Shown here in pieces: positions 15,294 through 63,532 of a stretch of DNA of 64,000 nucleotides (within the stretch, counting starts at the first letter, position 1; every line of letters begins with the position of its first letter). Made by a program: the position numbers and the translations under genes. The notes beneath the pieces are model-generated. The model saw only the letters and a program-made list of their open reading frames with translations, searched no databases and was not told the origin of the DNA. This DNA comes from Hyalangium minutum. Lineage in GTDB: Bacteria; Myxococcota; Myxococcia; Myxococcales; Myxococcaceae. The stretch covers positions 1 to 64,000 of the forward strand of contig NZ_JMCB01000003.1 in NCBI RefSeq assembly GCF_000737315.1, read 5' to 3'.

Positions 15294-16340
<1,047 letters not shown>

Positions 16341-16523
16341 TTGTTTCCGTAGGACCTCGGCCCGCGCCGTGACACGGCTTCACGCGGCGCGGGAAGAGGG
16401 GGCCCCTCCCCATAAAAGTGGGGGCCTATTGGCAATAGCGGACCTCGGTGTCGAGTCCGCTCTTCCCACCCGGTACCTGATACGGCCGGTGTGGTGGAGC
16501 CGAGAGGCTCCGGAGTCACGCTC

Positions 16524-35113: not shown

Positions 35114-35149
35114 CGGACAGGCTCACAAGTCCCCGGATAGCAGCCTCAC

Positions 35150-36618: not shown

Positions 36619-36659
36619 TCCACGTTCTTTTATCGAAGAGGGGCGGTGCGGGAACGAGG

Positions 36660-38129
36660 TCAGGGTTCTCCGGACGTGGGTGAACGTGGCGCATCGAACG
36701 TCGCGCGGATGCACTTGCCGTCGTACTCGTAAGCACCCGCACCGCAGGGCGGGTCCTTCTTCGAGATGAACCAGCAGGCCCCCAGGGCCTCGAGTTCATA
36801 GTCAGTATCGCAGGGCGGCTTCTTCTGCCCCGGCTGCGGAGCTTTGGGCATCGGAAGCCCCACCACGGAAGTCGCAGAAAGCACTGGAGGCGCTTGCACC
36901 ACCGACAAGAGGGCCTCCTCCCCCACGCCCGCGTCCGGTGCATCCATCGGCGGCACGTGATGCTCCTCCGTAATGGGAAGAGGCACAGGCTCCGGTGAGT
37001 TTCCGCCATGCCGGAACTCCGTCACTGCGAACACCAAGAGCCCGCCTGCCACGCTCGCAGTGGCCCATGAGAGCCAGAGCGGAAAGGTGTTGCGGAGGGC
37101 AGGGCGTTCGCGCTCCGTCGAGGGCCGTGCACTGCCCCTCTTTCTGGAGTGATTCGAAGGCGTGAGCTTGCGAGGAACCTCGTGCTCCGTGGGGACGGCT
37201 GCCGAAGTCTGGACAATGAGGGCATCCACCCGCCGGTCTGTTTGGTTTGCGGCCCGTTCCAGCGCCCGGACGATCTGCGCAGTGGTGCCGCGGTCCCGCG
37301 GATCCTCCGCCAGCAGGCGGAGAATGGTGCCCTCCAACTCCGGCGCGACTGCCGCGAACTCGCTGGGGCGCAGCAGCTTGCGTGGCTCCTCGGCGCGAGT
37401 CTCGGAGACAGGAGGAGGATAGCTTCCGGTCACCAGCCGGTACGCCGTCACCCCCAAGGCATACAGGTCATCTGAAGGGCGCGCTTCCCACCGGGCCTCG
37501 AGATCCTTGCGGTACTTCCACATGAAGCGCAGCAGTTCAGGCGCGCGGTAGGGCGTGGTGCCCGGCGGCACGAGGGTGTCGGTGAGGGCCCGAGCCTCCG
37601 GGAACCACGCTGCGCCGAAGTCAAGCAGCACCGCCCGCCCCTCTGGGGTGACGCGGATGTTGTCGCCTTTGACATCCCGGTGGATCACCCCTCGGGCATG
37701 CAGGGCCTCCAGGGCGCGGGCCACCGGCGCCAGCACCCGCAGCACCTCCCGGTTGGAGCGCGGCTTCTGGCGGAACCACTCGTAGAGGGTGGTGCCATCC
37801 ACCCACTCCATCACGATAAACGGGTAGCTATGGCCATCCGGTGAGGTCCAGCTCCCGAGCTCGTAGAAGCGCGGAACACTGGGGTGCTGAATCAGCTGGA
37901 GGATGTGCGCCTCTCGCTCGAAGCGCGGGTCGTCTGCCTGTTTGGCCACCTTCAGGGCCACGGGAGGAGCCGAGGGATCATCGGCTCGCCGGGCCCGGAA
38001 CACCACGCCATAGCTCCCGGAGTCGACGCGCTGCAGGAGGAGCCACGGGCCCAGGGTCGAACCCGCCGCCAGCACCTGGGACTTCACGAGGCCCACCACG
38101 TCATCACTCAAGAGAACTCCTCCAGCCAA
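36660..38129 (-). CDS. Ser/Thr protein kinase with TM helix and Cys-rich C-terminus
   Basis: GSYGVV, VALK, HRDVKGDN, DFG, GTTPYRAPE; start uncertain. Confidence 0.9.
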   Translation of the reverse strand: MAGGVLLSDDVVGLVKSQVLAAGSTLGPWLLLQRVDSGSYGVVFRARRADDPSAPPVALKVAKQADDPRFEREAHILQLIQHPSVPRFYELGSWTSPDGHSYPFIVMEWVDGTTLYEWFRQKPRSNREVLRVLAPVARALEALHARGVIHRDVKGDNIRVTPEGRAVLLDFGAAWFPEARALTDTLVPPGTTPYRAPELLRFMWKYRKDLEARWEARPSDDLYALGVTAYRLVTGSYPPPVSETRAEEPRKLLRPSEFAAVAPELEGTILRLLAEDPRDRGTTAQIVRALERAANQTDRRVDALIVQTSAAVPTEHEVPRKLTPSNHSRKRGSARPSTERERPALRNTFPLWLSWATASVAGGLLVFAVTEFRHGGNSPEPVPLPITEEHHVPPMDAPDAGVGEEALLSVVQAPPVLSATSVVGLPMPKAPQPGQKKPPCDTDYELEALGACWFISKKDPPCGAGAYEYDGKCIRATFDAPRSPTSGEP

Positions 38130-39020: not shown

Positions 39021-40064
39021 TCAGCTTCGATGCACGGGCAGCGTAGGAGGTATCGCCCCCGAGAGCGCTCGCATCGCCGAGGCCAGGGCTTCCACCGTGA
39101 CCGTGGACTCCGCGGCGCCCAGGCGCAGCGCCGCCTGGGGCATGTGAGGGGCGACGCAGCTCTCCGGGGGCTGCACGAACGTGAGCCCGCCCGCCCGGCG
39201 GATGGCCAGCAGCCCCGCCGCTCCATCCGAGCCCGTGCCCGTCAGCACCGCCCCCGCCGCCCGGTTGCCATGCGCCCGCGCCAGCGAGGTCAGCAGTGCG
39301 TCTCCCATCGCCAACTGCCGCCCGTGGATCAGCTCCACCTGCAGCTCCCCCGTCGGGAGCACCTGCAGCTGGTGCCCGTCCGGTGGCAGGTAGACGTGGC
39401 CCGCCTCGGGCTTCGTGCCCGTGCGCGCCACTTGCAGCTCCAGCGCCGAAGCCGCGCTCAGCCACTGGCGCAGCCCCGAGGTGAAGCCCACCGACACGTG
39501 CTGGGCGATGAAGAGCGGGTAGGGGAGGCTCGGCGGCAGCAGGGACAGCAACATCGCCAGCGCCGGAGGCCCTCCCGTGGAGGCCACCAGCCCAAAGCCG
39601 TGCACCCGCCCGCTGCGCAGCACCGGCGGCGGTGTGGGGTGGCTCAGCCGCGGCTTGCGGCTCCCCAAGGGAACCTCCGCCATGGTCCGGATCGTGTGGA
39701 TCAACTGCTGGCCGAAGCTCGTCAGGCCCTCCCGGCCCGGCGTGGGCTTGGGCATCACCTCCAGGGCTCCGGCCTGCAGCGCCTTGAAGGACAGCTCCGC
39801 GTCCACCGCCCCGGAGATGACGAGGATGCGGCTGGGCGACTCGGCCATGATGCGCTCGGTGGCGTTGATGCCATCCATCCGCGGCATCCGGACATCCAGC
39901 GTGACGACGTCTGGGCGGAGCGCCTGCGCCATCGCCACGGCTTCCTTCCCATCGTTCGCGGTGCCCACCACTCGGATGTCCGGGGCCGCCGCCAGCAGTC
40001 CGGTGAACATCCGCAGGATCGTGGGCGAGTCGTCCGCGATGAGAACCTGGACTGGCCTATTCAT
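39021..40064 (-). CDS. cheB: CheB-type REC-methylesterase (copy 1)
   Basis: ADDS...LDVRMP; ASTGG, AQHV, LTGTGSDG. Confidence 0.92.
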   Translation of the reverse strand: MNRPVQVLIADDSPTILRMFTGLLAAAPDIRVVGTANDGKEAVAMAQALRPDVVTLDVRMPRMDGINATERIMAESPSRILVISGAVDAELSFKALQAGALEVMPKPTPGREGLTSFGQQLIHTIRTMAEVPLGSRKPRLSHPTPPPVLRSGRVHGFGLVASTGGPPALAMLLSLLPPSLPYPLFIAQHVSVGFTSGLRQWLSAASALELQVARTGTKPEAGHVYLPPDGHQLQVLPTGELQVELIHGRQLAMGDALLTSLARAHGNRAAGAVLTGTGSDGAAGLLAIRRAGGLTFVQPPESCVAPHMPQAALRLGAAESTVTVEALASAMRALSGAIPPTLPVHRS

Positions 40065-40234
40065 GAGCACCTCGGAGGGCCGTCGAGAGCGCTGCGGAGG
40101 GTGAATGAATAGCCTGGATCCACATGGGCGTCCCCCCTACCCAAGTAGAACGATGATCAGGGTCTGGCCGTCGTGACTTCCGTGGCGAAGTGTGAACCGA
40201 CCACCACTTGAGCGAGGGCACCTGCCGCCGTGTT

Positions 40235-41287
40235 TCAGTTCCGAACCGCCGGAGTCACGGGCGCCGCGCCCGTGAACGAGCGCATGGCCGCGGCCAGGGC
40301 TTCGAGCGACAGCATCTGATCCGTGGCGCCGCTGCGCAGCGCGGCCTCGGGCATTCCCGGGACGACACAGCTCTCGGGGCTCTGCGCGAAGGTCCTCCCG
40401 CCCGCCTTGCGGATGGCCAGCAGCCCTGCCGCCCCATCCGAGCCCATGCCCGTGAGCACTGCCCCCGCCGCCCGGTCCCCATAGGCCAACGCCAGCGAGG
40501 ACAACAGCGTGTCTCCGAGTGAGGCCTTGCCAACGGGGATCGGCTCGACCTGCAGATCCCCCGCGAGTGTGACTTCGAATTGGTGCCCGTCCGGCGGCAG
40601 GTACACGTAGCCGGGCTGAGGCCGCACGCCCGTCTGCGCCACCTCGAGCTGCAGCGAGGACGCCGCGCCCAGCCACTGGCACAGGCCCGCGGTGAAGCCC
40701 ACCGACACGTGCTGGGCAATGAAGATCGGATACGGCAGCTGCGGAGGCAGCAGCGACAGCAGGTGGCAGAGCGCCGGAGGTCCTCCCGTGGAGGCCACCA
40801 GCCCAAACCCTGTCACCCGCCCGCCCTGGGGCGCGGGGGCCACCGGGCTCGGAGCCTGCGCGGGGGCCAGCGCCACCTGCCGCTGGCTCACCGGCAGCTC
40901 GGCCATGGTCCGGATGATGTGGATCAGCTTCACCCCGAAGTTGGCCAGCCCTTCCAGGTTGGGGCGCGGCTTGGGCATGACCTCCAGCGCCCCGGCCTGC
41001 AGCGCCTTGAAGGACATCTCCGCATCCACCGCCCCCGAGATGACGAGGATGCGGCTGGGGGCCTCGGTCATGATGCGCGAGCTGGCCTCGATGCCATCCA
41101 TCCGCGGCATCCGCACGTCCAGGGTGATGACGTCCGGCTGCAGCGTGCGTGCCAGCTCCAGGGCCTCGGCCCCATCCTTCGCCGTGCCCACCACTTGGAT
41201 GTCGGCCGCTGACGACAGCAGCGCCGCGTACATCTTCAACATGGTGGGCGAGTCGTCAGCGATGAGGACCCGGATGGTGGAGCTCAT
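40235..41287 (-). CDS. cheB: CheB-type REC-methylesterase (copy 2)
   Basis: ADDS...LDVRMP; ASTGG, AQHV, LTGMGSDG (intact triad). Confidence 0.93.
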   Translation of the reverse strand: MSSTIRVLIADDSPTMLKMYAALLSSAADIQVVGTAKDGAEALELARTLQPDVITLDVRMPRMDGIEASSRIMTEAPSRILVISGAVDAEMSFKALQAGALEVMPKPRPNLEGLANFGVKLIHIIRTMAELPVSQRQVALAPAQAPSPVAPAPQGGRVTGFGLVASTGGPPALCHLLSLLPPQLPYPIFIAQHVSVGFTAGLCQWLGAASSLQLEVAQTGVRPQPGYVYLPPDGHQFEVTLAGDLQVEPIPVGKASLGDTLLSSLALAYGDRAAGAVLTGMGSDGAAGLLAIRKAGGRTFAQSPESCVVPGMPEAALRSGATDQMLSLEALAAAMRSFTGAAPVTPAVRN

Positions 41288-41364
41288 GTGTGCACCTCGG
41301 AGGCAGGGGCGAGACTGCCCCAGAAACCGGATTCACGCCATGCACAGGTGAGCCCCGAAGCCCG

Positions 41365-42390
41365 TCAAGCGCCCGAGGACGACATTCCCTCCAGCTGGCG
41401 GATGATGGTGGCCAGCGCCTCTGGGGACACCTTCGTCTCCGTGGACTTGTTGCGCAGCGCGGCCTCCGGCATCGACGGCACCAGGCACGTCTCCGGATCC
41501 TGGGCGAAGGTGAGCCCGCCCGCGCGCTTGATGGCCATCAGGCCCACCGCGCCCTCCTCGCCCATGCCGCTGAGCACCGCGCCCGCGGCGTGCTGGCCAT
41601 AGGCTCGGGACAGGGACGCCAGCAGCAGATCCCCCGAGGGGAACGTGGTGCCCGAGGCCTTCTCGATGACGATCTCGCCCTGGAGCCCCACGCGCAGGTG
41701 GTGGCCATCCGGGGCCAGGTACACGGTGCCCGGCCGAGGCTGCTCCGAGGCGCGAGCAATCTCCACCGGCAGCGGAGACAGCGAGGACAGCCAGCGGTGC
41801 AGGCCCACGGTGAAGCCCGGGGTGATGTGCTGAGCGATGAAGACGGGGTAGGGCAGGCTGCGCGGCAGCAGCCACAGCAGCGAGGCCAGCGCCGTGGGCC
41901 CGCCGATGGACGAGAACAGCCCAAAGCCACCGATGCGCCGGCCCGCGGGCAGCGGCGGCGGGTTGGCGTGGCCCTCACGGCGCTTGGTCACCAGCGGCAC
42001 CTCCGCCAGCAACCGGATGGCCGACAGCAGGCGTACACCAAAGCGCGCCACATCCTCGGGAGAGCCCTGCGGCTTGGCGATCACCTCCAGCGCTCCGGCC
42101 TGGAGCGCGCGGAAGGACAGATCCGTGTCCGGGGCGCCGGACACCATGAGGATGCGGCAGGGCGTCTCGGCCATGATGCGCTCGGTGGCGCCCAGGCCAT
42201 CCATGCCCGGCATCTGCACGTCCAGGGTGATGACGTCCGGCTTGAGGGAGCGCGCCAGGGCCACGGCCTCCTCGCCGTCGCGCGCAGTCCCCACCACGGT
42301 CACGTCGGGCTGTGCCGACAGCAGCCGGGTGAGGACCTGGAGCATGGTGGGGGAATCGTCGGTGAGGAGGACTTGGATGGGCTTGCTCAT
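41365..42390 (-). CDS. cheB: CheB-type REC-methylesterase (copy 3, divergent active site)
   Basis: TDDS...LDVQMP; SSIGG, AQHI, LSGMGEEG (Asp replaced by Glu). Confidence 0.9.
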   Translation of the reverse strand: MSKPIQVLLTDDSPTMLQVLTRLLSAQPDVTVVGTARDGEEAVALARSLKPDVITLDVQMPGMDGLGATERIMAETPCRILMVSGAPDTDLSFRALQAGALEVIAKPQGSPEDVARFGVRLLSAIRLLAEVPLVTKRREGHANPPPLPAGRRIGGFGLFSSIGGPTALASLLWLLPRSLPYPVFIAQHITPGFTVGLHRWLSSLSPLPVEIARASEQPRPGTVYLAPDGHHLRVGLQGEIVIEKASGTTFPSGDLLLASLSRAYGQHAAGAVLSGMGEEGAVGLMAIKRAGGLTFAQDPETCLVPSMPEAALRNKSTETKVSPEALATIIRQLEGMSSSGA

Positions 42391-42483: not shown

Positions 42484-44697
42484 TCACCCGGCCTTGCGTT
42501 TCTTTTCACGCCGGGGACTGGCCTCAGGGGAAGGTGGCGAAGGGGGCAGGGCCGGCCGAGTCGAGGGGAAGGGCGTACCATCCGTGGGGCCGGTTTCTAC
42601 CCCCGGTACTTCCGCCGGGAGAGCGGGCAGGCGGATGACGAAGGTGCACCCCTCGCCGGGTTTGCTGTGCACGGCGATGCTCCCCCCGTGATTCTTGACG
42701 ATGCGCTGGCAGATGGCCAGCCCCAACCCTGTACCCTTTTCCTTCGTGGTGAAGAAGGGCACGAAGATGTGCTGTTGCTGGTCCAACGGAATCCCTGGCC
42801 CGGTGTCCGAGACGTGAACCTCGACGAACTCGTTGACGGTGCCGCCGCGGAAGTCTCCGAAGCGGTCCTGCTTCACGGTGCCCACGGTGATGCGCCCGCC
42901 CGGAGTCCCAATGGCCTGCACCGCGTTCTGGACCAGGTTGATGAGCACCTGCTTGAGCTGCTCTGCATCTCCGTCCACGCGCGGCGCCGTGAGGTCCAAC
43001 TGGACGGCCAGCTCGATCTGCTTGGGCACATCGTTCTGGATGAGGCGCATGGTGCGGGTCACCACCTCATTGAGGTCCGTCTGGCCAAAGTTTTGCTTCA
43101 GCGGCCGAGCGTAGTCCAGGAACGCCGTCACCACGCCATTGAGGCGGTTGACCTCTTCGACGATGACGCCCAGGAACTCGCCGTCCTCGCCCGGGAGCCG
43201 CTTCGGATCCAGGCACTGCGCCGCGCCCTTGATCGCCCCCAGGGGGTTGCGGATCTCGTGCGCCAGGCCCGCCGCCATCTCGCCCAGGGCCGCCAGGCGG
43301 TCGCGCTCGCGGATCTTTTCATACAGCTTGGAGTTCTCCAGCACCGTTGCCAGGCGCTCGGCCACCGTGAGGATGAGGGCGATCTCGTCCGAGGCGTAGG
43401 CCTCCGGCACGCGCTCGTCCCACAGGTTCAGGAAGCCGATCACCCGATCGTTGCCCACCAGCGGCACGGAGATGCCGGACTTCATCTGCAGCAGCGCGGC
43501 GCGCGTGTCCTGCAGGCGCTTGAGCTCGTCCCGGAAGCGCTTGCCCTCGGCCGCGTGCATTCGCAGCGCCGCCAGCCGCGTGTCCACGTTCTCCAGCAGC
43601 ACCGCCTTCTGCCCCGAGGCCGCCGCCAGCAGCAGGCCGCGCGCCGCCGCCGTGTCCAGGAAGCCCTCGGGCGGAGGGCCGCGTGAGTCCAGCAGCCGGT
43701 AGCCCGGACGATCCTCCGCCATCATGTACACGGAGGTATGGGTGACGCGGCCCGTCTCGTGGAGCGCGTCCAGCACCATCCGCGTCACCTCGGAGATGTC
43801 GATCACCGTGGCCATGCGCGCCCGGAGGTTCCCGAGCACTCGCAGCAACTCGAAGCGCTCGCGGAAGAAGATGGCCACCACCTGCTCGTCCACCTTCACG
43901 CGCAGGGGCTCCATCAGGATGATGGTGACGAAGGCGGCCACCACCGTGTTGAAGACGAAGAGGCTCGCGTTCTCCTTCACCCACACGGTCAACACCGTGA
44001 AGACGGCGGCCAGGATGAAGGCCAGCACCGTCTGCGAGGCGATCTTCCCCAGCAGCTCGTGCAGGTCCATCAGCCGCAGCCGCAGCAGCGTCTGGGAGAG
44101 GAAGAACAGGTACATCGTGGAGAAGATGGGCCCCAGCGGCGGCAGGGGAATGTCGTAGCGCCGGCCCACGAGGTCCACGGCCGCGAGGACGATGGTGACG
44201 CCTGCGCCCAGGGCCAGGTACATCAGCCGCAGCCGCTCGATGCGCGATTGCTGGCTGCGCACCTGGTTGAGCAGCAAGCTCACCGAAGTCAGCAGGGTAC
44301 CGAGCACCCAGACGCTCACCGCCACGCGCGCCCAGTTCTGCTGCGCCAGCGGCGTCACCGCCACCGCCAGCCCGAACACGCCTGAGAGCAGGGCGAGCCG
44401 CCGGCCCTGCATATGGGCCTCTTTGCTGACGCCCAGGAACTCCAGGAAGAAAGAGACGGCTGACAGGGGGACAAGCGAGGCGAACAGGATGGTGGCGCCC
44501 ACCGCCGTTCTGGACACCCAGCCGGGCTCGGGGAAGATGCCCGCGAAGAACAGCGCCAGGTAGTACCCCGCCACCGTGAGGGCGAAGACGGAATACAGTG
44601 TCACCACCCGAGGGCGGCCCGGCCGCAAGAGCATGGCGAGCCCGAGCGCCAGGCCGACGAGGGATGCAAGCAGGGCGCTCTGAGTGCGGATGTCCAT
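42484..44697 (-). CDS. Membrane sensor histidine kinase with GAF domain (NtrB/PilS-like core)
   Basis: Multi-TM N-terminus, GAF, LAHEIRNPL, NLVQNA, DTGPG, FFTTK..GTGLGL. Confidence 0.95.
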   Translation of the reverse strand: MDIRTQSALLASLVGLALGLAMLLRPGRPRVVTLYSVFALTVAGYYLALFFAGIFPEPGWVSRTAVGATILFASLVPLSAVSFFLEFLGVSKEAHMQGRRLALLSGVFGLAVAVTPLAQQNWARVAVSVWVLGTLLTSVSLLLNQVRSQQSRIERLRLMYLALGAGVTIVLAAVDLVGRRYDIPLPPLGPIFSTMYLFFLSQTLLRLRLMDLHELLGKIASQTVLAFILAAVFTVLTVWVKENASLFVFNTVVAAFVTIILMEPLRVKVDEQVVAIFFRERFELLRVLGNLRARMATVIDISEVTRMVLDALHETGRVTHTSVYMMAEDRPGYRLLDSRGPPPEGFLDTAAARGLLLAAASGQKAVLLENVDTRLAALRMHAAEGKRFRDELKRLQDTRAALLQMKSGISVPLVGNDRVIGFLNLWDERVPEAYASDEIALILTVAERLATVLENSKLYEKIRERDRLAALGEMAAGLAHEIRNPLGAIKGAAQCLDPKRLPGEDGEFLGVIVEEVNRLNGVVTAFLDYARPLKQNFGQTDLNEVVTRTMRLIQNDVPKQIELAVQLDLTAPRVDGDAEQLKQVLINLVQNAVQAIGTPGGRITVGTVKQDRFGDFRGGTVNEFVEVHVSDTGPGIPLDQQQHIFVPFFTTKEKGTGLGLAICQRIVKNHGGSIAVHSKPGEGCTFVIRLPALPAEVPGVETGPTDGTPFPSTRPALPPSPPSPEASPRREKKRKAG

Positions 44698-47259: not shown

Positions 47260-48650
<1,391 letters not shown>

Positions 48651-48654
<4 letters not shown>

Positions 48655-49244
48655 TCGAAAGTGCCGTCCTGGTTCTGAACCGGAACTACCAGCCTGTCCA
48701 CGTCACTTCCGTCAAGCGCGCCTTCTCCTTGCTGTACCAGGGCGTGGCCAAGGCCATTGACGACCAGTACCGGCTCTACGAGTTCGCCGACTGGGCCGCG
48801 CTGAGCGCCACCACCGACTGCATCACCACGGTGAACCGCTCCATCCGCGTGCCCCGCGTGCTGGTGCTCTCTGTCTACGAGTACCTCCCCAAGGGCCGGG
48901 TGCGCTTCTCACGTCTCAACATCTACGCGCGCGATCACGACACCTGCCAGTACTGCGGGCGCACCCTGCCTCGCTCGGAGCTGAACCTGGATCACGTGCG
49001 GCCTCGCTGTGACGGAGGCAAGACGACGTGGGAGAACGTTGTCTGCTCGTGCGTGCCCTGCAACCTGAGGAAGGGCGGGCGCACCCCGGAGCAAGCAGGG
49101 ATGAAGCTGCTGCGGAGACCTTTCCGCCCGAAGTGGACGCCGCTGTTCCGCGGAGCCATCCGGCGTGTCACCTACCGTGAGTGGTTGCCCTTCCTGAGGG
49201 TAGAGGACGCCTCTTACTGGAACGTGGAGCTGCTGGACGAGTAG
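48651..49244 (+). CDS. HNH endonuclease (McrA/HNH_5-like)
   Basis: RDHDTCQYCG...DHVRPRCDGG...WENVVCSCVPCNLRKG; ATGA overlap with selA. Confidence 0.92.
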
Positions 49245-49386
49245 CGCGGCCCCGGTCCTCTGGGGCCGAGTGTGGCCGATTTTTCTCCGAGTGGGTCCCC
49301 GAGGGGCACGGATGCGTCCGTGCTCCAGACATCCGGGCCGAGGCTCGCCCCCCATGGCGAGCCCTGCGGCAGGGAAGGGGACACAC

Positions 49387-51039
49387 GTGAAACAGAATCG
49401 GTTGCTGATGCTGGGCGCGCTCGCGATCGTCTTCAGCCTCGTGGGCTGTGACTGCGGCGGCGGAGATTCGAAGCCTCCCATCGAGGAGCCGGACGGCGGT
49501 ACCACTCCCTCGGATGGGGGAACGGACATCCCCGACGGAGGCCCCGGCTCGGTGTGCCTGGCGCAGGGGGCGGCGTGCAGCCGGACCTCGGGGGCCCAGT
49601 GCTGTAACGGCGTGTGCGGCGCGGACAATGTGTGTCCGGCGCCCAATGAGCTCTGCAAGAGCCCCAACGAGGTCTGCCAGACGGGCGGCGAGTGCTGCAC
49701 CAATATCTGCTCGAACGGCAAGTGTGCCTCCAACCTGTGCAAGGACGTGGGCCAGGCCTGCGCCACCGCCGAGGACTGCTGCACCAAGACATGCACCGGC
49801 GGCACGTGTGCGAACGTCCCCGGCAACGTCTCCAGCTGCAAGGTGCTGGGCCAGGCTTGCGCCTCGGGCGCGGAGTGCTGCTCCACCAACTGCCAGGGCG
49901 GCGTGTGCACCCGCGCCTATACCTGCAAGGCCTACGGGGACGTGTGCCTCACGGACGCGGAGTGCTGCGGCCAGTCGTGCTCCTCGCCGGACGGTGTCAC
50001 GGCGGGCCGCTGCGAGTTCATCACCGGCGGTGGTGGCGGTGGCTGTCGGCAGGACGGCAACCCGTGCTCGGGTGGCTCCGGGTGCTGCTCGCGCACCTGC
50101 GTGGATCTGGGCTACGGCGCCACGGTCTGCCAGCCCGTGGGGGGCTGCAAGCTCACGGGTAACGCCTGCAACGCGGCCAATGACTGCTGCGGCGGCGGGA
50201 CCAACCCCAACGGCTCGGTGACGTGCGCGGGGGGACGGTGCGACAACGGCCAGAGCTGCAACGGCGTGGGCAACATCTGCGGCTCCGGCAAGCTGCCGGA
50301 TGGTGGCACCACGGACATCAACGCCTCGCAGAACTGCTGCGACGGCCGCAAGAACGTCTGCAAGGTGGACTCCTCGGGCGTGCCCCGCTGCTTCGGCGGC
50401 GGCAGTACCCAGTGCCCTACGGGCTACACGGGCACCGCGCCGTGCTGCATCAACGATGGCCAGAACTGCCAGTTCTCCGACCAGTGCTGCGGTGACGCCC
50501 TCTGCCTGCCCAACGGCAGCGGCGGGCTGAGCTGCCAGCGGCCCACGTGCTCGCCGGTGGGGGCTCCCTGCACCTCCGAGGCTGGCGGCACCTCGGCCTG
50601 CTGCGCGGGCTCCAGCTGCTTGCCGGTGGACGAGCTCAACTTCGCCTGCCAGGCCCCCCGGCCGCCCACCAGCGGCACGGATGGCGGCACCGGCGGGACT
50701 CCGGACGCGGGGCCGGCGTGTAAGGCCAACGAGACGGCCTGCACCTCGCCCTCGCAGTGCTGCTCGGGCATCTGCACGGGCGGTCTGTGCAAGCCGCCCG
50801 CCCTGTGCCAGCCGCAGAACGGGGCCTGCACCTCGGGGGCGGACTGTTGCCAGGGGCTGCGGTGCGACGTGCCGTCCGGCTCCACGACGGGCACCTGCCA
50901 GCCGGGCGCCGCATGCTCGGCCAGCGGCCAGGCGTGCTCGCCCTCGGTGGGCTGCTGCTCCGGCCTCAGCTGCGAGACGGCCTCCGGGACCGCCTGCGAC
51001 GGCACCTCGGCGTGCCTCTGCATGGTGATCCTCAACTAG
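49387..51039 (+). CDS. Cys-rich repeat lipoprotein (about 13 C-C-CC-C-C units)
   Basis: GTG start, lipobox LVGC; tandem six-Cys units. Confidence 0.85.
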   Translation: MKQNRLLMLGALAIVFSLVGCDCGGGDSKPPIEEPDGGTTPSDGGTDIPDGGPGSVCLAQGAACSRTSGAQCCNGVCGADNVCPAPNELCKSPNEVCQTGGECCTNICSNGKCASNLCKDVGQACATAEDCCTKTCTGGTCANVPGNVSSCKVLGQACASGAECCSTNCQGGVCTRAYTCKAYGDVCLTDAECCGQSCSSPDGVTAGRCEFITGGGGGGCRQDGNPCSGGSGCCSRTCVDLGYGATVCQPVGGCKLTGNACNAANDCCGGGTNPNGSVTCAGGRCDNGQSCNGVGNICGSGKLPDGGTTDINASQNCCDGRKNVCKVDSSGVPRCFGGGSTQCPTGYTGTAPCCINDGQNCQFSDQCCGDALCLPNGSGGLSCQRPTCSPVGAPCTSEAGGTSACCAGSSCLPVDELNFACQAPRPPTSGTDGGTGGTPDAGPACKANETACTSPSQCCSGICTGGLCKPPALCQPQNGACTSGADCCQGLRCDVPSGSTTGTCQPGAACSASGQACSPSVGCCSGLSCETASGTACDGTSACLCMVILN

Positions 51040-55100: not shown

Positions 55101-56084
55101 ATGTCGCTCAAGACGCGATGGCTTGCGAGCATGTGGGGGGTGATTTTGGGAGGGATCGTCATCACGACGATCGCGAGCTCCAGCCTCAGCATCATCGGCC
55201 TTGGGCTGCTGTTGCTGCCGCTGCTGGGGTTCATCGTCTGGAGGCTCGTCAATGACATGGTGCGTGAGCTGACGGAGACTCAGCGGCGGCTCGCCTATTC
55301 GGAGAAGATGGCCGCGGTCAGCCAGCTCGCCGCGGGCGTGGGACACGAGATCAACAACCCCATCACCTATGTCTCCGCCAATCTCGGCTTCGCCACGGAG
55401 ATCCTCGCCGAGCTGAGCGGTACCTCCCGGACTGCGGACTCCCCGCCGCTGCCTCCCGAGGTGGCCGAGCAGCTCCGCGAAGTCTCCGAGGCCCTGCGGG
55501 AGGCGCAGGATGGGGCCCAGCGCGTGGCCCGCATCGTGAGGGATCTGCGCACCTTCGCTCAGCCCGGCAATGCGGCGGGGCAGCTGGTGGAGATCCGCTC
55601 CATCATCGAGTCCGCGCTGAAGCTCGCCTCCAACCCCCTCCTGCTCCGGGCGCGTGTCTTCTGTGACTTCCAGGTGGAGATCCGGGTGAGGGCCCCCGAG
55701 GCGCGGTTGGTCCAGGTCTTCATGAACCTGCTCGTCAATGCGGCACAGGCCATTCCTCCTGGGCACGTCGAGGAGAACGAGGTCCGCGTCACCACGTCCC
55801 TGGGGACCGAGGGCTTCATCGTGGTGGAGGTGAGTGACACGGGGCAGGGCATGCCTCCCGAGGTGCTCAAGCGGTTGTTCGAGCCCTTCTTCACCACCAA
55901 GCCGGTGGGGCAGGGCACGGGCCTGGGGCTGTCCATCTGCCGGAACGTCATCGAGGGGATGGGGGGCACCCTGACGGTGCGTAGCACCGTGGGGAAGGGC
56001 AGCGCCTTCCGGATCACCTTGCCCGAGGCGGGGCCTCTGGGCGCGCAGTTCCCTCAGGACGCGGGGGCGGCTCTGCGCGGGTGA
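55101..56084 (+). CDS. Two-TM histidine kinase without an extracellular sensor
   Basis: VGHEINNPI, NLLVNAAQA, DTGQGM, FFTTKPVGQGTGLGL. Confidence 0.92.
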   Translation: MSLKTRWLASMWGVILGGIVITTIASSSLSIIGLGLLLLPLLGFIVWRLVNDMVRELTETQRRLAYSEKMAAVSQLAAGVGHEINNPITYVSANLGFATEILAELSGTSRTADSPPLPPEVAEQLREVSEALREAQDGAQRVARIVRDLRTFAQPGNAAGQLVEIRSIIESALKLASNPLLLRARVFCDFQVEIRVRAPEARLVQVFMNLLVNAAQAIPPGHVEENEVRVTTSLGTEGFIVVEVSDTGQGMPPEVLKRLFEPFFTTKPVGQGTGLGLSICRNVIEGMGGTLTVRSTVGKGSAFRITLPEAGPLGAQFPQDAGAALRG

Positions 56085-56222
56085 GCAGGGGCCGTGCGTT
56101 CCATGTTGGTGCACCTCGCCTCAATCTGGAGCGAGCAGGAGATCCAAACTGGACGGGAATTCCCTCGGTTCCGAGCGGCTCCCGTCTGAAACGGTGCAGG
56201 CACGCGGCTCGCATGGGTGGGG

Positions 56223-58538
56223 ATGAACCCCCAACGAGCAGGTGTCCGCGTGCCTCCGCCGAACAACAGCAGCGAAGCCATCCAGCGCATCTCCCTGAAG
56301 AACCGCGAGTACGCGTACATCGAGGACGCCAACCGCGGTGTGGTGCTGGTGGAGATCGGCCCCAAGGTGCTCACGCTGGAGGCCCACCTCACCCTGGTGA
56401 CCAAGAGCCGGATGATCGAGCTGGGCACCGGCAGCTGGTGCGTGGTGCGCAACCCGGTGGTGCGCGAGGAGGGCAAGGTCTCGTTGGACGACTTTGGCCA
56501 GGCCCGTATCGCCGTGGGCGATCGCGAGGTCCGCGTCGGTCCTCAGGTGTTCCCGCTGTACCCCGGTGAAGAGCTCGAGGGCGAGATCACCCCCGAGTAC
56601 GTGCTGGGAGTCTATGACGCGCTCCGGCTGCGCGCGCTCACGGCGTTCATGGATGAGCGGACCCCGGGTGGGCCGCGCCGCCGCGAGGCCGGTGACGAGT
56701 GGCTCGTGCGAGGCCCTGGCCGCTACGTCCCGAGCGCCGCAGTGATGGTGGTCTCCACCGAGAAGGCTCGCGTCCTGAAGGAGACCGAGTACTGCATCGT
56801 GCTCAACCCCGTGGATCGAACCACTGGGAAGATCCAGGAGGGCCGCCGCAAGGTCATCTCAGGCCCGGACGTGTTCTTCCTGGAGCCGGGCGAGCAGCTC
56901 GAGGGCGACGTCCGTCGCAAGCACGTGCTCTCGGAGATGCAGGGGCTGAAGCTCCAGGCGCTCGATGACTTCTCCGAGCCGGAGGAGGGCGGCGAGCCCC
57001 GGCTGCGCAAGGCGGGTGACACGTGGATCGTCCGTGGCCCGCGCACCTACGTGCCGAACGAGAAGGTCGTCATCCAGAAGGAGATCGTCGCGCTGTCGCT
57101 TGGCCAGGGCGAGGGCCTCTACGTGAGGGATCTGCGCTCCGGCAAGGTGTCGCTGGTCCAGGGGCCGTGCCAGTTCATGCCCGAGGCCCACCAGGAGCTG
57201 CACGAGAAGCGGCTCTCGCCGGATGCCGAGGCGCTGCTGGGCCTGGCGCCGCCCGCGCAGGCGCCGCACCTGGCCGCCGTGGAGGGCAAGGAGGGCAAGG
57301 CGCCGCCGCGTCCGTCCGCCAGCGCTTCGGATCGGGTGGACCGTACGCGCGCCATCGTGCTGCGCATCGAGGACAACACCTCGGTGCTCATCAACGACTT
57401 CGAGACCAACCACGCCCGGGTGGAGTTCGGCCCCGCGAAGGTGATGCTGCGCCCCTACGAGGACGTGACGGTGCTCGACTTGTCCGGCGGGACGCCCAAG
57501 CGCCCGCGGCAGCTCAAGGTGCTCATGCTGCGCCTGGGGCCTGACTTCGCCACGGACCTGTTCGAGGTGGCCACGCGGGACCACGCGCGCCTGCGCATCA
57601 AGCTCTCGTACAAGTGGCAGTTCGACGTGGAGGGGGACTCAGAGAAGGACAAGGCCATCTTCCGGGTGAACGACTTCATCGGCTACGTGTGCGAGAACCT
57701 CGCGTCGCGCATCCGCCAGGTGGCGGCGGAGAACGACTTCGAGACGTTCCACAAGAACGCGAGCGTGCTGATCCGCCGTGCCATCTTCGGGGTGGATGAG
57801 GCGGGCAAGGCGCGCAAGGACCGCCTGTTCAGCGAGAACAAGCTGCGCATCATCGACATCGACATCAAGGACATCGCCCCGGTCGATGACAAGACGGCGC
57901 TCAAGCTGCGCGAGGCCATCGACACCAACATCCAGATCCAGCTGGATGCGTCGAAGCAGGAGGCGCAGGCAGCGGCCGAGCTGAAGCGCATCCGCAGCGA
58001 GGAGGAGAAGCAACTGGCGGATATCTCCAGCCACCGGAAGTCGGAGGCGGAGCGCCAGTCGCTCATCGAGCTGCAGAACAAGAACCATCAGCTGGCCACG
58101 CTGAGCCACGCGAAGGTGGAGGCCGAGGCGCAGCTGGAGAAGGCGCGCGTGGAGAGCGAGGAGGCATTGGCCCGAGCCGAGGCCGAGGCCCGCGCGTCCC
58201 GCATCCGCACCGAGGCGGAGCTCGAGCGCGAGCGGATGATGTCGGAGGTGACGCTGGAGCGGCAGAAGAAGCTGAATGATCTCGAGGTGGATCGTCAGGC
58301 GCGGCTGGCGGCGGTGGAGGCTGATCAGTTCCGCCAGCGGGTCGAGGCGCTCGGGGGCGGAGAGAACTTCGTCAAGGCGGTGGCCGCGCAGGCACAGGCG
58401 GCGGTGGTGGGCGGCCTGGACAAGGTCGTCTTCCTGCCGAGCGGCTCGAACCTGAACCTGTTCGACTCCATGCAGGGGCTGCTCGGCCCTGGAGGCAAGA
58501 ACGGGGTGACGGGCGACAAGAACACCGGCACCCACTGA
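56223..58538 (+). CDS. Major vault protein (MVP) homologue
   Basis: MVP repeats (PLYPGE, AGDEWLVRGPGRYVP, FFLEPGEQLE, AGDTWIVRGP, EGLYVRD), LGPDFATD...TRDHARL shoulder, DFIG...ASRIR...FHKN, long cap helix, NLNLF cap ring; ATG 56223 (or GTG 56217). Confidence 0.93.
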   Translation: MNPQRAGVRVPPPNNSSEAIQRISLKNREYAYIEDANRGVVLVEIGPKVLTLEAHLTLVTKSRMIELGTGSWCVVRNPVVREEGKVSLDDFGQARIAVGDREVRVGPQVFPLYPGEELEGEITPEYVLGVYDALRLRALTAFMDERTPGGPRRREAGDEWLVRGPGRYVPSAAVMVVSTEKARVLKETEYCIVLNPVDRTTGKIQEGRRKVISGPDVFFLEPGEQLEGDVRRKHVLSEMQGLKLQALDDFSEPEEGGEPRLRKAGDTWIVRGPRTYVPNEKVVIQKEIVALSLGQGEGLYVRDLRSGKVSLVQGPCQFMPEAHQELHEKRLSPDAEALLGLAPPAQAPHLAAVEGKEGKAPPRPSASASDRVDRTRAIVLRIEDNTSVLINDFETNHARVEFGPAKVMLRPYEDVTVLDLSGGTPKRPRQLKVLMLRLGPDFATDLFEVATRDHARLRIKLSYKWQFDVEGDSEKDKAIFRVNDFIGYVCENLASRIRQVAAENDFETFHKNASVLIRRAIFGVDEAGKARKDRLFSENKLRIIDIDIKDIAPVDDKTALKLREAIDTNIQIQLDASKQEAQAAAELKRIRSEEEKQLADISSHRKSEAERQSLIELQNKNHQLATLSHAKVEAEAQLEKARVESEEALARAEAEARASRIRTEAELERERMMSEVTLERQKKLNDLEVDRQARLAAVEADQFRQRVEALGGGENFVKAVAAQAQAAVVGGLDKVVFLPSGSNLNLFDSMQGLLGPGGKNGVTGDKNTGTH

Positions 58539-58555: not shown

Positions 58556-58595
58556 GGGGCGGGCTTCTTCCCTCCATTGGACAGAAGTCCGCCCC
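58556..58595 (+). terminator. 13-bp hairpin after the MVP gene (attenuator or mRNA stabiliser)
   Basis: GGGGCGGGCTTCT...AGAAGTCCGCCCC, one G-U pair; no U-tract. Confidence 0.5.
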
Positions 58596-60316: not shown

Positions 60317-61294
60317 TCAGTCAGCAGGCTTCGTCGAGGCTGCTTTCCGGGCCAGTTCGAGCTGCTCGCGGATCCACTCTCTGTAGAAGTAGGTGCTTGT
60401 GTACTCGGAGAACTCGACAGGGGCGCGATAGCTCGTCTTCGCGATCCCGACGAGCTCCAAGGCGTCGCCGTTCTCGCGGAGGCACGGGCCTCCACTGTCT
60501 CCAGCCAGTGCGTACGAGGCGGTCTCCCGCATCAGGAGCGGCTCTCCCTCGGAGAAGGTGGGCGGAATGAGCAAGGGCTTCGCGATGCGAAAGGTCTTGC
60601 CGTCCGTCTCTTCCAGAGATGCGACCTCATTGGTGCCTATCCGGCGAGCACCGCCATCCTCAGCATTGGGTCTCGTGACACCGTAGCCCACGCTGATCAC
60701 GGGTTCTGAGACACGGACCTTGGTGCGAGAGAGAGGAACGGCACGGAGTCCGCCAACGAGCGGTCGATCCAGGACAATGACTGCGAGGTCCGCATTGCTG
60801 GAGAGTTCCCGGCTGTCCGACTCACGGGCGTAACGGATCTTGAGCTCCGGATGAGGACGAACCCGCCCAGTGTGCGAGATGACATCTGCTGGCCACTGCA
60901 GGTCCTCTCGCAGGATGCTTCTCTGCTCTTCTGAGAGGGGCCTGTAGCGGACGGTCGTCACAGTGGCGGTCTTGGCGCACTGGGATGCATCAACGACGAA
61001 GGTCCCTGCGTCTTCGGGAGTGGTCCCTGCATGGGAGGCGCACACGCAGTGACCAGCCGTGAGAATGAGCTGAGCATGGGTGAGCACCCCGCTGCACGTT
61101 TTGAAGGCTACGCCTTTCCTGCTATCGAAGGTCGCGGTGACCCTGACGGTCGAGGCGTAGCGGTTCGAGGCATCCAGGACACTCTCCGAGACAATGGAGT
61201 AGCCACCGCTGGTCTGCTGCACCGCACCAGGACCCGCACAGCCGATGAGGGCTGTGAGCGGGAGCCAGATAAGGCATCTTGTGAAAGGGCTCAT
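60317..61294 (-). CDS. Trypsin-like (S1) serine protease lipoprotein
   Basis: Lipobox LIGC; TAGHC, DLAV, GDSGGP triad. Confidence 0.9.
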   Translation of the reverse strand: MSPFTRCLIWLPLTALIGCAGPGAVQQTSGGYSIVSESVLDASNRYASTVRVTATFDSRKGVAFKTCSGVLTHAQLILTAGHCVCASHAGTTPEDAGTFVVDASQCAKTATVTTVRYRPLSEEQRSILREDLQWPADVISHTGRVRPHPELKIRYARESDSRELSSNADLAVIVLDRPLVGGLRAVPLSRTKVRVSEPVISVGYGVTRPNAEDGGARRIGTNEVASLEETDGKTFRIAKPLLIPPTFSEGEPLLMRETASYALAGDSGGPCLRENGDALELVGIAKTSYRAPVEFSEYTSTYFYREWIREQLELARKAASTKPAD

Positions 61295-62208
61295 GGGACC
61301 TGACCTTCAGCGGTGTGCCTGAGTTCACTCCGCACCCACGCTTGATATCCGTGGATGCTCGTGCAGGCTGCGCCCCTTCCCAGGTTCCTGCTGGAGACTC
61401 CGACGAGGAGGGAATGGCCCGAGTCTTCGCGCAGGCAGGGGCCGCCGCTGTCGCCCTTGTAGAGGTGTCCAGACGGTTGCCTCACCAGGATCCTTGAGTC
61501 GCCAGCCACGGGAGGTCTCGTGGCCGTGTTTCTGCTGAACCGGCGGTTTTGATCATAACGATCATAGATCTCATCGTAGGCCTGCCCGGCGATGATGAGG
61601 GTCTCGGGAGGTTGAGCCTCCGTGCGTGCCATAAGGACAGGGGAGATCGCTTCTTCCACGGGACTTTCCAAGTGAATCATCGCAAGGTCCGCGACGCTGG
61701 AGACAACTTCTCCGTGGTCATTCAGGAGCACGCGGAACGCCGGGTGGGGATGGACCACTCCCAGGTAGAGCGCGCTGCTGGAACTGGCTTCATCCTCCAG
61801 GCCTGGGACGGGGGTGTAGAGGATCGTCGAGACGGCCGCCCTCTGGGCGCAGTTCGAAGCATCCATGAGGGAGGCGGACTGCGGGGCGCATAGGCAGTGC
61901 GCAGCTGTCAGGACAGCCCGGCGGTCCACCAGCACGCCGCTGCATCGCTTCGACTGCTCGCCGAGACGGGCGCCGACCACCACCGCCGAGGCGTAGCGGT
62001 TCTCCTTGTCCAACTTGCCCGCGAGCAGGAGCCGATCCGCCTCGATGGTCAGGGCCAGGGACTCCCCGAGCTCCCCAGCGATAGGGCTCGTGACAGTCCT
62101 GGGGGCCGCAGGGGCAGGGGGAGGTCTCGGGGCCTGGCACCCATCGCAGCCCACGAACGCGGTGAGCGCCAGAAAGGCTGTGGCGAGCCAGCCCCGAGGG
62201 GAGGGCAT
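61291..62208 (-). CDS. Trypsin-like (S1) serine protease lipoprotein
   Basis: Lipobox FVGC; TAAHC, DLAM, GDSGGP; 4-nt overlap with the next gene. Confidence 0.9.
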   Translation of the reverse strand: MPSPRGWLATAFLALTAFVGCDGCQAPRPPPAPAAPRTVTSPIAGELGESLALTIEADRLLLAGKLDKENRYASAVVVGARLGEQSKRCSGVLVDRRAVLTAAHCLCAPQSASLMDASNCAQRAAVSTILYTPVPGLEDEASSSSALYLGVVHPHPAFRVLLNDHGEVVSSVADLAMIHLESPVEEAISPVLMARTEAQPPETLIIAGQAYDEIYDRYDQNRRFSRNTATRPPVAGDSRILVRQPSGHLYKGDSGGPCLREDSGHSLLVGVSSRNLGRGAACTSIHGYQAWVRSELRHTAEGQVP

Positions 62209-62209
62209 C

Positions 62210-63532
62210 TCAGAGGCCGGCCAGCGACATGTTCTGCTGGCGCTTGGACAGCACCTTCACCGGCTGGATCGCCATCACGCGCATGAAGACCTGGAGCAAC
62301 TCCGGGTCGAACTTGTTGCGCATCTCCGTCCACATCAGCATCAGCGACACCTCGGGCCCATACGCATCCCGGTACGGCCGCTTGCTCGTCAGTGCGTCGA
62401 ACGCGTCGCAGATGGCGATGACCTTCGCGTACACCCCGAGGCTCGTCTTCGGGATGATCATCTGGATGTTGCCGCGCGTGTCCCGCACCGCCGTCCCGAA
62501 GTCCGCCTTGTGCTCGAACGTCGTCACCACCCGCAGCAGCGTCGAGCGCGTGATGCTCTTCTCCATCAGGATGTTGCGCACCGAGATCAGCGGCGCCTTC
62601 TGGATCAGCACCTTCTCCTCGGACGTCAGCGCCCCGCGCTTCGTCGCCAGCTCGTCCGGGATCGTCGACATCCCCGCGTCGTGGAACAGCGCGATGTAGC
62701 CCAGGTCCCGCAGCTGCGGCTTCGTCAGCCCCAGCTCCGCCCCGAACACGATGCTCATCAGGCACACGTTCACCTGATGGAACACCAGGTACTCCGACTC
62801 GCGCTTCGTGGTGGTCATCCCCAAGAAGTGCGTTCGCTGATCGTACGAGATGTCCACCAGATCCTGGACGAGCCGCAGCGCCTTGGACGTGTTCATCGGC
62901 TTCCCGGCCCGCACCGACTCCAGGTACTTCTGCAGGAAGAACACCGCGCGCGCGTACACCGTCATCGCGTACTTCTTCCGGTCGACCTTGTAGTCGCCCG
63001 GGTTCTCCAGCTTGTCCGCCTCCTTGGCCAGCTTCTCGCGCAGCTTGGAGAACTTGGCGACCTTCATGTTCAGCAGCTTCCGGTCCGCCAGGCCCTCCTC
63101 GCTCGCCTCCGAGGTCTGCTCCTTGCTGAAGATCCATACGAAGTTCTTCAGCTCCGGCAGGGTGATCGGCTTGGAGATGGAGAACCCACCCACGTCCTTG
63201 GCCCGCATCTCCGACAGCAGGTAGCGCTGGTTCTCGATGGCGTTCAGGTCCACCTTCACCAGCATGCTGTTCAGGTAGAAGGAGTCCTTCACCCCCACCA
63301 GATCCAGCCGCCCCTCCTTGGAGACGATCTGGTTCATGATGTCCTGCAGCTGCGTCAGCGGCTTCTCGAAGACGGCGTTGTCCGGGTCATACATCTTCAC
63401 GGACCGCACCAGCATGTAGAGCCCGGACACCATCCCGCGCGCCAGCGTCTGCAGCTTGTCCGAGTGCGCACGGCCATACTCGCCACCGCTGCTCTCGCTC
63501 TGGGCCTGGGTGATTTTCAAGTTGTCGGCCAT
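62210..63532 (-). CDS. HD-GYP-like protein with degenerate GYP motif
   Basis: ALFHDAG, ICDAFDALTSKRPYR, KFDPELL; the expected HHExxDGxGYP is replaced by FEHKADFG. Confidence 0.85.
   Translation of the reverse strand: MADNLKITQAQSESSGGEYGRAHSDKLQTLARGMVSGLYMLVRSVKMYDPDNAVFEKPLTQLQDIMNQIVSKEGRLDLVGVKDSFYLNSMLVKVDLNAIENQRYLLSEMRAKDVGGFSISKPITLPELKNFVWIFSKEQTSEASEEGLADRKLLNMKVAKFSKLREKLAKEADKLENPGDYKVDRKKYAMTVYARAVFFLQKYLESVRAGKPMNTSKALRLVQDLVDISYDQRTHFLGMTTTKRESEYLVFHQVNVCLMSIVFGAELGLTKPQLRDLGYIALFHDAGMSTIPDELATKRGALTSEEKVLIQKAPLISVRNILMEKSITRSTLLRVVTTFEHKADFGTAVRDTRGNIQMIIPKTSLGVYAKVIAICDAFDALTSKRPYRDAYGPEVSLMLMWTEMRNKFDPELLQVFMRVMAIQPVKVLSKRQQNMSLAGL

Follow-up and report, generated by a model that had tools for sequence, protein, structure and literature searches.

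The 64,000-nt stretch of Hyalangium minutum DNA analyzed here (the window; positions 1 to 64,000 of contig NZ_JMCB01000003.1) encodes, at 56250..58538 of its forward strand, a protein truly homologous to the major vault protein (MVP), with a similarity to known MVPs that lies far beyond chance. Eukaryotic MVP self-assembles as a 78-mer barrel with D39 symmetry, in which two 39-mer half-shells are joined at the waist, and what the resulting vault does has been a puzzle since 1986. We estimate at roughly 0.6 the probability that the bacterial gene specifies a conditionally expressed, self-assembling cytoplasmic vault-like cage made from this one gene product, a nanocompartment that we infer from homology, and we regard the gene as a tractable entry to the vault problem and not as a new system.

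The gene lies in a plus-strand open reading frame (ORF) that runs without interruption from alternative starts at 56217 (GTG) or 56223 (ATG) to 58538. Its G+C content at the first, second and third codon positions (0.71/0.41/0.92) is the signature of a real gene in a window with 63-72% G+C, and the third-position value (GC3) resembles that of the adjacent genes, a match that identifies the gene as native to the host genome. The motifs by which the original prediction had recognized MVP (LGPDFATD, TRDHARL, DFIGYVCENLASRIR, FHKN, APVDDKT and NLNLF...GLLG) are all present in the translation, and the profile check that it had proposed came out in its favour, with every MVP model of Pfam matching above its curated gathering score:

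MVP_shoulder (PF11978): E = 2.4e-45, 153.8 bits, model positions 1-118 of 118
Vault_2: E = 7e-34
Vault: E = 1.2e-29
Vault_3: E = 3.7e-22
Vault_4: E = 2.4e-6

The vault repeat models PF01505, PF17794, PF17795 and PF17796 score 102.5, 116.6, 78.7 and 28.1 bits, respectively, against cut-offs of 27, 23.6, 28.8 and 22.9. NCBIfam has no model for the product, which explains the 'hypothetical protein' labels borne by its homologues. A phmmer search of the Protein Data Bank (PDB) matches the MVP chains from the solved vaults of rat, human and rabbit at E-values of about 1e-132 to 1e-139 (7e-139 for rat MVP), in alignments that reach from the first repeat (R1) to the cap ring. Structural comparison leads to the same identification. 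An AlphaFold2 (AF2) monomer model derived from a 62-sequence alignment, with a mean predicted local distance difference test score (pLDDT) of 80 and values above 90 in the beta-repeats, shows seven beta-repeat domains followed by an alpha/beta shoulder and a helix of ~150 residues. In a Foldseek search of the PDB with this model, the best 17 matches are all MVP structures (best full-length E-values of 1e-52 to 1e-42), and the matches that rank after them, to HflK/C, flotillin, prohibitin, stomatin and erlin, cover the shoulder and helix at E-values of 1e-6 to 1e-3.

The latter matches are significant, and they lend some weight to a different reading, in which the protein would be an SPFH-type scaffold that, in the manner of HflK/C, flotillin, stomatin or QmcA, forms a single-layer ring or half-cage at the inner membrane instead of a closed vault of two halves. 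Cages of this kind are numerous in bacteria, some eukaryotic vaults are described in the literature as membrane-associated in situ, and in HflK/C, flotillin, prohibitin, stomatin and QmcA an SPFH fold leads into a long helix whose bundling closes a dome, as it does in the MVP shoulder and helix. SPFH cages, however, are membrane-anchored single domes that lack an N-terminal beta-repeat barrel and a waist. A hydropathy scan of the Hyalangium protein detects no hydrophobic segment, transmembrane helix, hairpin or lipobox (the peak 19-residue Kyte-Doolittle value is 1.33), and the protein is therefore predicted to be soluble and cytoplasmic. Instead of an anchor it carries, in the ~420 residues before the SPFH domain, seven soluble beta-repeats under strong purifying selection. 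The residues through which half-vaults are joined in rat and human (A6, I7, R9, N22 and D39; PMC12280208) correspond in its R1 to A19, I20, R22, N37 and E53, so that the first four are identical and the fifth is changed from D to E; N37 is invariant in 62 sequences. Together with the advantage of some 40 orders of magnitude that MVP structures hold in the Foldseek search, this makes a membrane scaffold unlikely in our view.

The same evidence bears on the 'colicin uptake' label under which cyanobacterial and Chloroflexi homologues appear in databases. The label implies a TolA-like envelope protein, and a coiled-coil similarity to TolA domain II is indeed reported in the available text of two earlier papers (Daly 2013, PMC3762200; Sokolskyi 2019). 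The similarity is limited, nonetheless, to the Ala/Glu/Lys-rich cap helix; Pfam returns MVP models only, no N-terminal membrane anchor is found and no tol or pal genes are adjacent to the MVP gene. We find an envelope function of this type scarcely credible.

Among the possible starts of the gene, GTG 56250 is most likely the true one, since its alignment column holds ATG or GTG in the aligned orthologues, whose proteins begin with MPP(S/P)NNSSEAIQ, and since it is preceded by the conserved Shine-Dalgarno-like GAGCAGGTG. The product would then start with MPPPNNSSEAIQ. The upstream ATG 56223 is disfavoured because a predicted transcription start at ~56224 places it outside the mRNA or at its extreme end. 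The gene is organized as follows, with amino acids (aa) of the domains numbered from ATG 56223:

56250..58538, + strand: MVP coding sequence (762 aa, 84.7 kDa, pI 5.9, without transmembrane segment; alternative starts 56223 ATG and 56217 GTG)
56274..56780, + strand: R1, R2 and one R3/R5-type repeat (aa 18-186; phmmer to rat MVP 5-172; AF2 pLDDT >90)
56781..57536, + strand: repeats R6, R7, R8 and R9, by their rat equivalents (aa 187-438; MAFFT columns 200-306, Pfam, phmmer, AF2)
57537..57887, + strand: SPFH-like shoulder (aa 439-555; PF11978 over full model length; Foldseek SPFH matches)
57888..58352, + strand: cap-helix domain of ~155 residues (aa 556-710; AF2 helices 556-599 and 606-709)
58353..58535, + strand: cap-ring region (aa 711-755, with VVFLPSGSNLNLFDSMQGLLGPGG) and variable C-terminal tail (756-771), aligned to rat 803-853

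The claim of a full MVP architecture contained in the original prediction holds for the order of the domains, with repeats, SPFH-like shoulder, cap helix and cap ring following one another as in eukaryotic MVP, and fails for the number of repeats, which is seven here and nine (R1-R9) in rat, human and cyanobacterial MVP. The phmmer alignment breaks accordingly into two segments, one pairing query 18-189 with rat 5-172 and the other pairing query 127-758 with rat 220-853, and MAFFT places a single gap of ~105 residues at aa 186/187 that coincides exactly with two repeats of PF01505 type in the MVPs of cyanobacteria and eukaryotes. The gap is common to all myxobacterial orthologues (745-766 aa) and to other short bacterial forms. 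The two missing repeats are from R3-R5, which in human vaults provide the docking surface for the MINT domain of PARP4; because two of these repeats are missing, a PARP4-type docking surface is predicted to be absent. The remainder of the protein follows the eukaryotic template closely. A basic 'keyhole' loop (TPKRPRQLK, aa 424-432) directly precedes the shoulder, the cap helix equals rat 647-802 in length, rat 647-853 is aligned without large gaps and the NLNLF...GLLG motif of the cap ring is conserved in the alignment; R8 holds a variable loop (aa 340-372) that is disordered in the AF2 model.

Selection on the gene was estimated by the Nei-Gojobori method against three Myxococcaceae/Archangiaceae orthologues and a 66%-identical homologue (locus L022). 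The ratio (omega) of nonsynonymous (dN) to synonymous (dS) divergence is 0.11-0.16 overall in the three Myxococcaceae/Archangiaceae comparisons, where it lies between ~0.02 and 0.2 in every folded domain, and 0.33 against L022, values that indicate strongly purifying selection. Both terminal tails and the R8 loop (aa 340-372) are free to diverge, and constraint is greatest in R9, in the shoulder and above all in the cap ring, where dN is 0 in two of the three comparisons (Hyalangium and Vitiosangium orthologues) at a dS of 0.56-0.77. To our knowledge the cap ring has no role outside the closed oligomer, and its constraint thus constitutes indirect evidence for assembly.

A genome scan covering one genome per species (185,579 species) identified 98 MVP relatives, the best 80 of which were kept as loci. 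The closest proteins are those of Hyalangium, Vitiosangium and Archangium (91-94% identity), Melittangium (89%) and Corallococcus (85-87%), and besides these myxobacterial genera the best 80 of 98 loci belong to filamentous cyanobacteria, to Chloroflexi/Anaerolineae and to large sulfur bacteria (Thiomargarita, Parabeggiatoa, Thiotrichaceae). The distribution within the myxobacterial order appears patchy, since no Myxococcus, Stigmatella or Cystobacter record is found among the best 80 of 98. Library-wide, the family amounts to 220 clusters (50% identity) at E <= 1e-30 and to 969 at E <= 1e-10, many of whose members are much shorter than 760 aa.

Patchy occurrence (Corallococcus, Hyalangium, Archangium, Vitiosangium and Melittangium among the best 80 of 98 loci) and a genomic position that varies between genera are also what one would expect of a relic of horizontal transfer from eukaryotes, either drifting or co-opted as a soluble protein that does not assemble, and a eukaryote-to-bacterium transfer of MVP is suggested in the available text of Daly 2013 (PMC3762200). 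Yet omega is ~0.1 in every folded domain, codon composition is native, and a lineage-specific bacterial sigma-54 promoter, described below, has been kept with the gene. In the identity matrix, moreover, the nine-repeat MVPs of eukaryotes, cyanobacteria and Chloroflexi share 53-57% identity with one another, whereas the myxobacterial proteins reach no more than 35-39% identity with any of them and find their nearer relatives in other short bacterial forms (41-51%). For this reason the myxobacterial MVP represents a deep, separate bacterial lineage with seven repeats and not a recent eukaryotic import, in a comparison that is unrooted and does not give the direction of any ancient transfer. A decaying or repurposed eukaryotic gene is accordingly a very improbable explanation.

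The regulatory region of the gene was compared in alignments of 9 and 23 orthologous regions, and the presence of the promoter was assessed in 24 myxobacterial loci. The ~160 nt before the MVP start can be aligned across genera in spite of differing upstream genes. Alignability begins abruptly at ~56093, 9 nt after the stop codon of the preceding histidine kinase gene, and the sequence farther upstream cannot be aligned between genera. Within and around the conserved block the following elements can be recognized:

56093..56160, + strand: conserved upstream block with dyad-symmetric elements, a candidate enhancer (upstream activating sequence, UAS), from the orthologous alignments
56100-56109, + strand: dyad TCCATGTTGG of TCCA-N3-TGG(A) type, centred at ~-119 from the predicted transcription start
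56126-56133, + strand: CTGGAGCG, an inverted repeat of the GCTCCA in site A of the orthologues
56143-56153, + strand: dyad TCCAAACTGGA of TCCA-N3-TGG(A) type, centred at ~-76
56198..56213, + strand: -24/-12 promoter of sigma-54 (RpoN) type, AGGCACGCGGCTCGCA, with GG at 56199-56200 and GC at 56211-56212; predicted transcription start ~56224
56236..56244, + strand: Shine-Dalgarno-like GAGCAGGTG, 5 nt before the GTG and kept in nearly all orthologous loci
58556..58595, + strand: hairpin resembling a terminator (G+C-rich stem of 13 bp, no T-run), 18 nt past the stop codon

The promoter element, AGGCAC-GCGGC-TCGCA, has the exact GG-N10-GC geometry of the sigma-54 consensus (TGGCAC-N5-TTGCA). The pattern GGCA[CT]-N5-T[CG]GCA occurs upstream of MVP in 23 of the 24 myxobacterial loci, with GG and GC invariant in those 23; the columns of the element are nearly invariant between variable flanks and next to a spacer that carries a 10-nt indel. 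Like the promoter, the upstream dyads have been retained in 23 of 24 loci. The promoter element is found neither upstream of the MVP gene of L022 nor upstream of that of a 50%-identical homologue (L081), whose upstream region is AT-rich and sigma-70-like. Positions near -76 and -119 are the usual location of sites for enhancer-binding proteins, and the upstream dyads are candidate UAS elements to which an NtrC-type activator may bind; TCCANNNTGGA occurs four times in the window against 0.69 expected. On the downstream side, the hairpin has a folding energy of -31.3 kcal/mol (z = -4.4, with 0 of 200 shuffles as stable) and is carried also by locus L002. For the next ORF, whose TTG 'start' it overlaps, ATG 58637 is the more likely start. 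From these elements the MVP gene can be read as a portable, predicted monocistronic unit composed of enhancer, sigma-54 promoter, leader of ~26 nt, coding sequence and terminator. Promoters of the sigma-54 class are silent without an activated AAA+ activator, and conditional expression of MVP is thus a natural inference; in myxobacteria, such activators govern development, motility and stress responses.

Other sequence features were noted. A sole sigma-54 activator, an enhancer-binding protein with FHA, GAF, sigma-54-activator and HTH_8 domains, is encoded in the window (21899-23608, + strand), 33 kb from the MVP promoter, and a loose match to the sigma-54 consensus lies at 35901-35916 (+), within ~1.5 kb (35113-36660) that contains no confidently called gene. 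Seven Corallococcus loci (L013, L015, L016, L018-L021) present an AT-rich CGATATTGAAAATGAGAATCGTTATCGA ~15-45 nt past the MVP stop, which is Fur-box-like and probably pertains to the downstream gene. A nearly perfect inverted repeat of ~35 bp per arm is found in L022 (9840-9930), upstream of the 66%-identical MVP gene, which lacks the sigma-54 module; the contig is labelled Planctomycetota, yet its MVP is of the myxobacterial type.

Taken together, these data suggest a model in which a single-gene, sigma-54-dependent module encodes a seven-repeat MVP able to self-assemble, without dedicated partner genes, as a hollow vault-like cage in the cytoplasm. Subunits would pack laterally through their repeats, SPFH-like shoulder and long cap helix, with the cap ring shutting each half-shell and R1 joining the two half-shells at the waist. 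Because each subunit lacks two repeats, the barrel should fall short of the 67 nm of the eukaryotic vault, with a difference of some 8-12 nm on a rough estimate from vault dimensions. An unlinked NtrC-type enhancer-binding protein would turn on expression by way of the conserved dyads upstream, and the particle would form with no PARP4- or TEP1-type residents encoded near MVP. A more specific version of the model, on which we are tentative and would not quite wager, holds that a native, shorter seven-repeat cage without cargo genes exists in Myxococcaceae/Archangiaceae as the product of an MVP lineage deeply split from the nine-repeat one of eukaryotes and cyanobacteria, and that it is made only upon a signal acting through sigma-54 and a dedicated activator, such as starvation-induced development or stress.

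Several observations weigh against such a cage. Full-text literature searches returned no report of a bacterial vault particle, and nothing in the window indicates a function for MVP. Two fewer repeats may alter the curvature of the shell or its subunit number, or may stop closure altogether, and pLDDT falls to 50-79 in the cap helix and cap ring, as expected of a monomer model. Regarding its expression, none of the loci has a sigma-54 activator gene within 10 kb of MVP, and in a single G+C-rich sequence the match to the sigma-54 consensus does not reach significance (9 matches, with 16 expected when 2 mismatches are allowed), so that the case for the promoter rests on its conservation. The ligand pocket of the shoulder, finally, is preserved only in part. 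Human MVP binds NAD+, ADP and ADP-ribose between adjacent shoulders through R437, R504, K506, R507, P508, H509, R511, L517, D521, F522, W545, P565 and K573. Only 6 of these 13 residues are kept in Hyalangium (K426, R427, P428, D441, F442 and W465), several basic residues being lost among the seven that differ (E354, T424, R429, L431, R437, N483 and E491). The keyhole loop, on the other hand, is retained across the bacterial clade and stays basic, and this leaves an anionic, nucleotide-like ligand in the shoulder as a weak possibility.

Comparison with known systems helps to delimit what is shared and what is peculiar to the Hyalangium protein. With the MVP of eukaryotic vault shells (rat 4V60/4HL8, human 9BW5/9MXJ, rabbit 9Z4W) it has in common the domain order from an R1-type waist repeat to the cap ring, 36-38% identity over ~83% of its length, the waist residues, the KRP core of the keyhole and the residues equivalent to D521, F522 and W545. 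It departs from them in having seven repeats instead of nine and no PARP4 MINT docking surface, in seven of the 13 NAD+ pocket residues and in its sigma-54 promoter, which is a bacterial trait; eukaryotic vaults contain TEP1, PARP4 and vault RNA, none of which is encoded in this 64-kb window, and the cage here is a prediction from the gene. The listed MVPs of Corallococcus and Melittangium fall in the same orthologous group (85-89% identical, 757-759 aa), likewise have seven repeats and carry the promoter module described above. The Hyalangium copy is distinguished from them by its closer identity (92-94%) to the proteins of Hyalangium, Vitiosangium and Archangium and by its setting, which has an RluD-type pseudouridine synthase gene on one side, genes that vary with the lineage on the other and the insertion of a histidine kinase gene upstream. 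The nine-repeat MVPs that occur in filamentous cyanobacteria, in Chloroflexi and in large sulfur bacteria, and that often bear the name 'colicin uptake protein', are likewise bacterial stand-alone genes without a conserved neighbour and, as in myxobacteria, they occur in gliding or filamentous organisms; they are longer (850-896 aa) and closer to eukaryotic MVP (53-57%) than to this protein (38-40%). Asgard homologues (PMC12962969) are also shortened, with a cap helix, a shoulder and fewer repeats, and their cage too has only been modelled. By description they stand apart, having five repeats, being tied to MVP mainly by structure and being modelled as a closed ten-subunit cup.

The existence of myxobacterial MVP genes was already established, as far as the available text of the relevant papers goes, and the original prediction was right in stating that bacterial homologues had been noted in sequence surveys: Corallococcus and Melittangium orthologues figure in in-silico papers of 2013, 2019 and 2023. 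H8MNI3 of Corallococcus coralloides is listed among bacterial homologues whose folding and docking in silico resemble those of MVP (Daly et al. 2013, PMC3762200), Sokolskyi (2019) treats the MVPs of Myxococcales (including Enhygromyxa salina), Cytophagales and Oscillatoriales and links them with gliding motility, and a 2023 preprint on phage MVPs places the proteins of C. coralloides and Melittangium boletus as sister to a cluster of eukaryotes and cyanobacteria. More recently, prokaryotic MVPs were described from only few Bacteria in the study that reported the five-repeat Asgard homologues (Nat Microbiol 2026, PMC12962969). Our literature searches also bear out the statement that no native bacterial particle is established, having found no observed bacterial vault, cargo or phenotype. 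The repeat count, the promoter and the monocistronic structure are not mentioned in the available text of the 2013, 2019 and 2023 papers. As far as those texts go, then, the seven-repeat architecture, the orphan status of the gene across phyla and the sigma-54 module are additional to them.

A single 2.3-kb gene without partner genes, under strong selection and with a defined, probably inducible promoter, offers direct experimental handles. An activator binding the conserved dyads would reveal when the cell has need of the cage, and the seven-repeat form constitutes a natural experiment on the relation between repeat number and cage geometry that should be useful for vault nano-engineering. 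If the proposed cage is real, it would be the first genetically accessible system in which to dissect vault function, and it would bear on the possible prokaryotic origin of vaults.

The genomic context of the gene was searched for partners by tblastn of 18 window proteins against the 80 MVP loci and by de novo clustering of the ORFs within 6 kb of them. Upstream of MVP, on the same strand, lie in order housekeeping-type genes for an SLT/TPR transglycosylase, SelA, an HNH nuclease, a 589-aa protein, a MinD/ParA ATPase and a DnaJ-HTH (RodZ-like) protein, followed, nearest MVP, by those for a pseudouridine synthase (PseudoU_synth_2 and S4 domains, RluD-type) and a 327-aa soluble histidine kinase. 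Downstream are a 142-aa ORF, an opposite-strand ORF of 418 aa rich in Pro, Ala and Glu, two trypsin-like proteases and an HD-domain (PF13487 HD_5) protein. Synteny of these neighbours extends only within the genus, all flanking genes being different in Archangium, Vitiosangium and Corallococcus, and in the 80 loci no gene family accompanies MVP both in myxobacteria and in cyanobacteria, Chloroflexi or sulfur bacteria. The neighbours of L081 are equally uninformative as to a partner. Bacterial MVP genes are thus orphans. No TEP1/TROVE or PARP4 gene had been noticed in the window by the original prediction, and this agrees with the absence of TROVE, PARP, vWA and TIR domains from all 38 gene predictions that were scanned in the 17-64 kb part of the window; an Rfam scan of the whole window at gathering thresholds yielded no vault RNA or Y RNA, its only match being an L17 ribosomal-protein leader (16438-16494). 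The suggestion of a role in defence or predation found no support in these searches, with no PADLOC match for MVP, for the upstream kinase or for the two downstream ORFs, and with no conserved neighbour.

Two adjacent genes were considered as partners and set aside. The upstream kinase (55101-56084) is absent at the closest loci (L004 and L007), where the RluD-type gene directly precedes the MVP module. It is therefore a local insertion, the RluD-type gene abutting the MVP enhancer in both of those loci, and a regulatory link between the kinase and MVP is speculative. The downstream 142-aa ORF, a candidate cargo, follows MVP in 3 of ~24 loci and is separated from it by the terminator-like hairpin. 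As to mobile elements, no plasmid carriage of MVP was found. MVP-like proteins occur in jumbo phage genomes too: three huge uncultured phages (462-735 kb) contain MVP-like ORFs with ~25% identity over 67-73% of the query (LR756500.1, 21231-23378; LR756501.1; LR756503.1, 17794-19566).

Some further features of the neighbourhood deserve mention. The plus-strand kinase at 55101-56084 consists of a HisKA and HATPase core only and is most like the cores of the Myxococcus EspA/EspC kinases. Farther upstream, selA is followed with a 4-nt overlap by the gene for the 197-aa HNH endonuclease (47260-49244, +), a pair that is kept in L004 and L007, and the HNH protein gives weak PADLOC matches to PtuB-type and type II restriction HNH domains. 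The adjoining 589-aa ORF (49270-51039, +; second-position G+C 0.67) is without a match in Pfam, NCBIfam or PADLOC and is overlapped by antisense ORFs of high GC3; it is probably a real low-complexity protein, since it is conserved at 70-73% in L004 and L007. On the minus strand, the tandem trypsin-like serine proteases (325 and 305 aa, 60317-62208) show weak PADLOC matches to LmuA and are adjoined by the HD-domain (PF13487 HD_5) protein at 62210-63532 (-). More distant from MVP, a run of short ORFs at 345-16949 (+) reads as a ribosomal-protein operon of S10/spc/alpha type, and 39024-42390 (-) holds three tandem paralogues (341-350 aa) that combine a receiver with a CheB methylesterase domain, next to a GAF histidine kinase at 42484-44697 (-).

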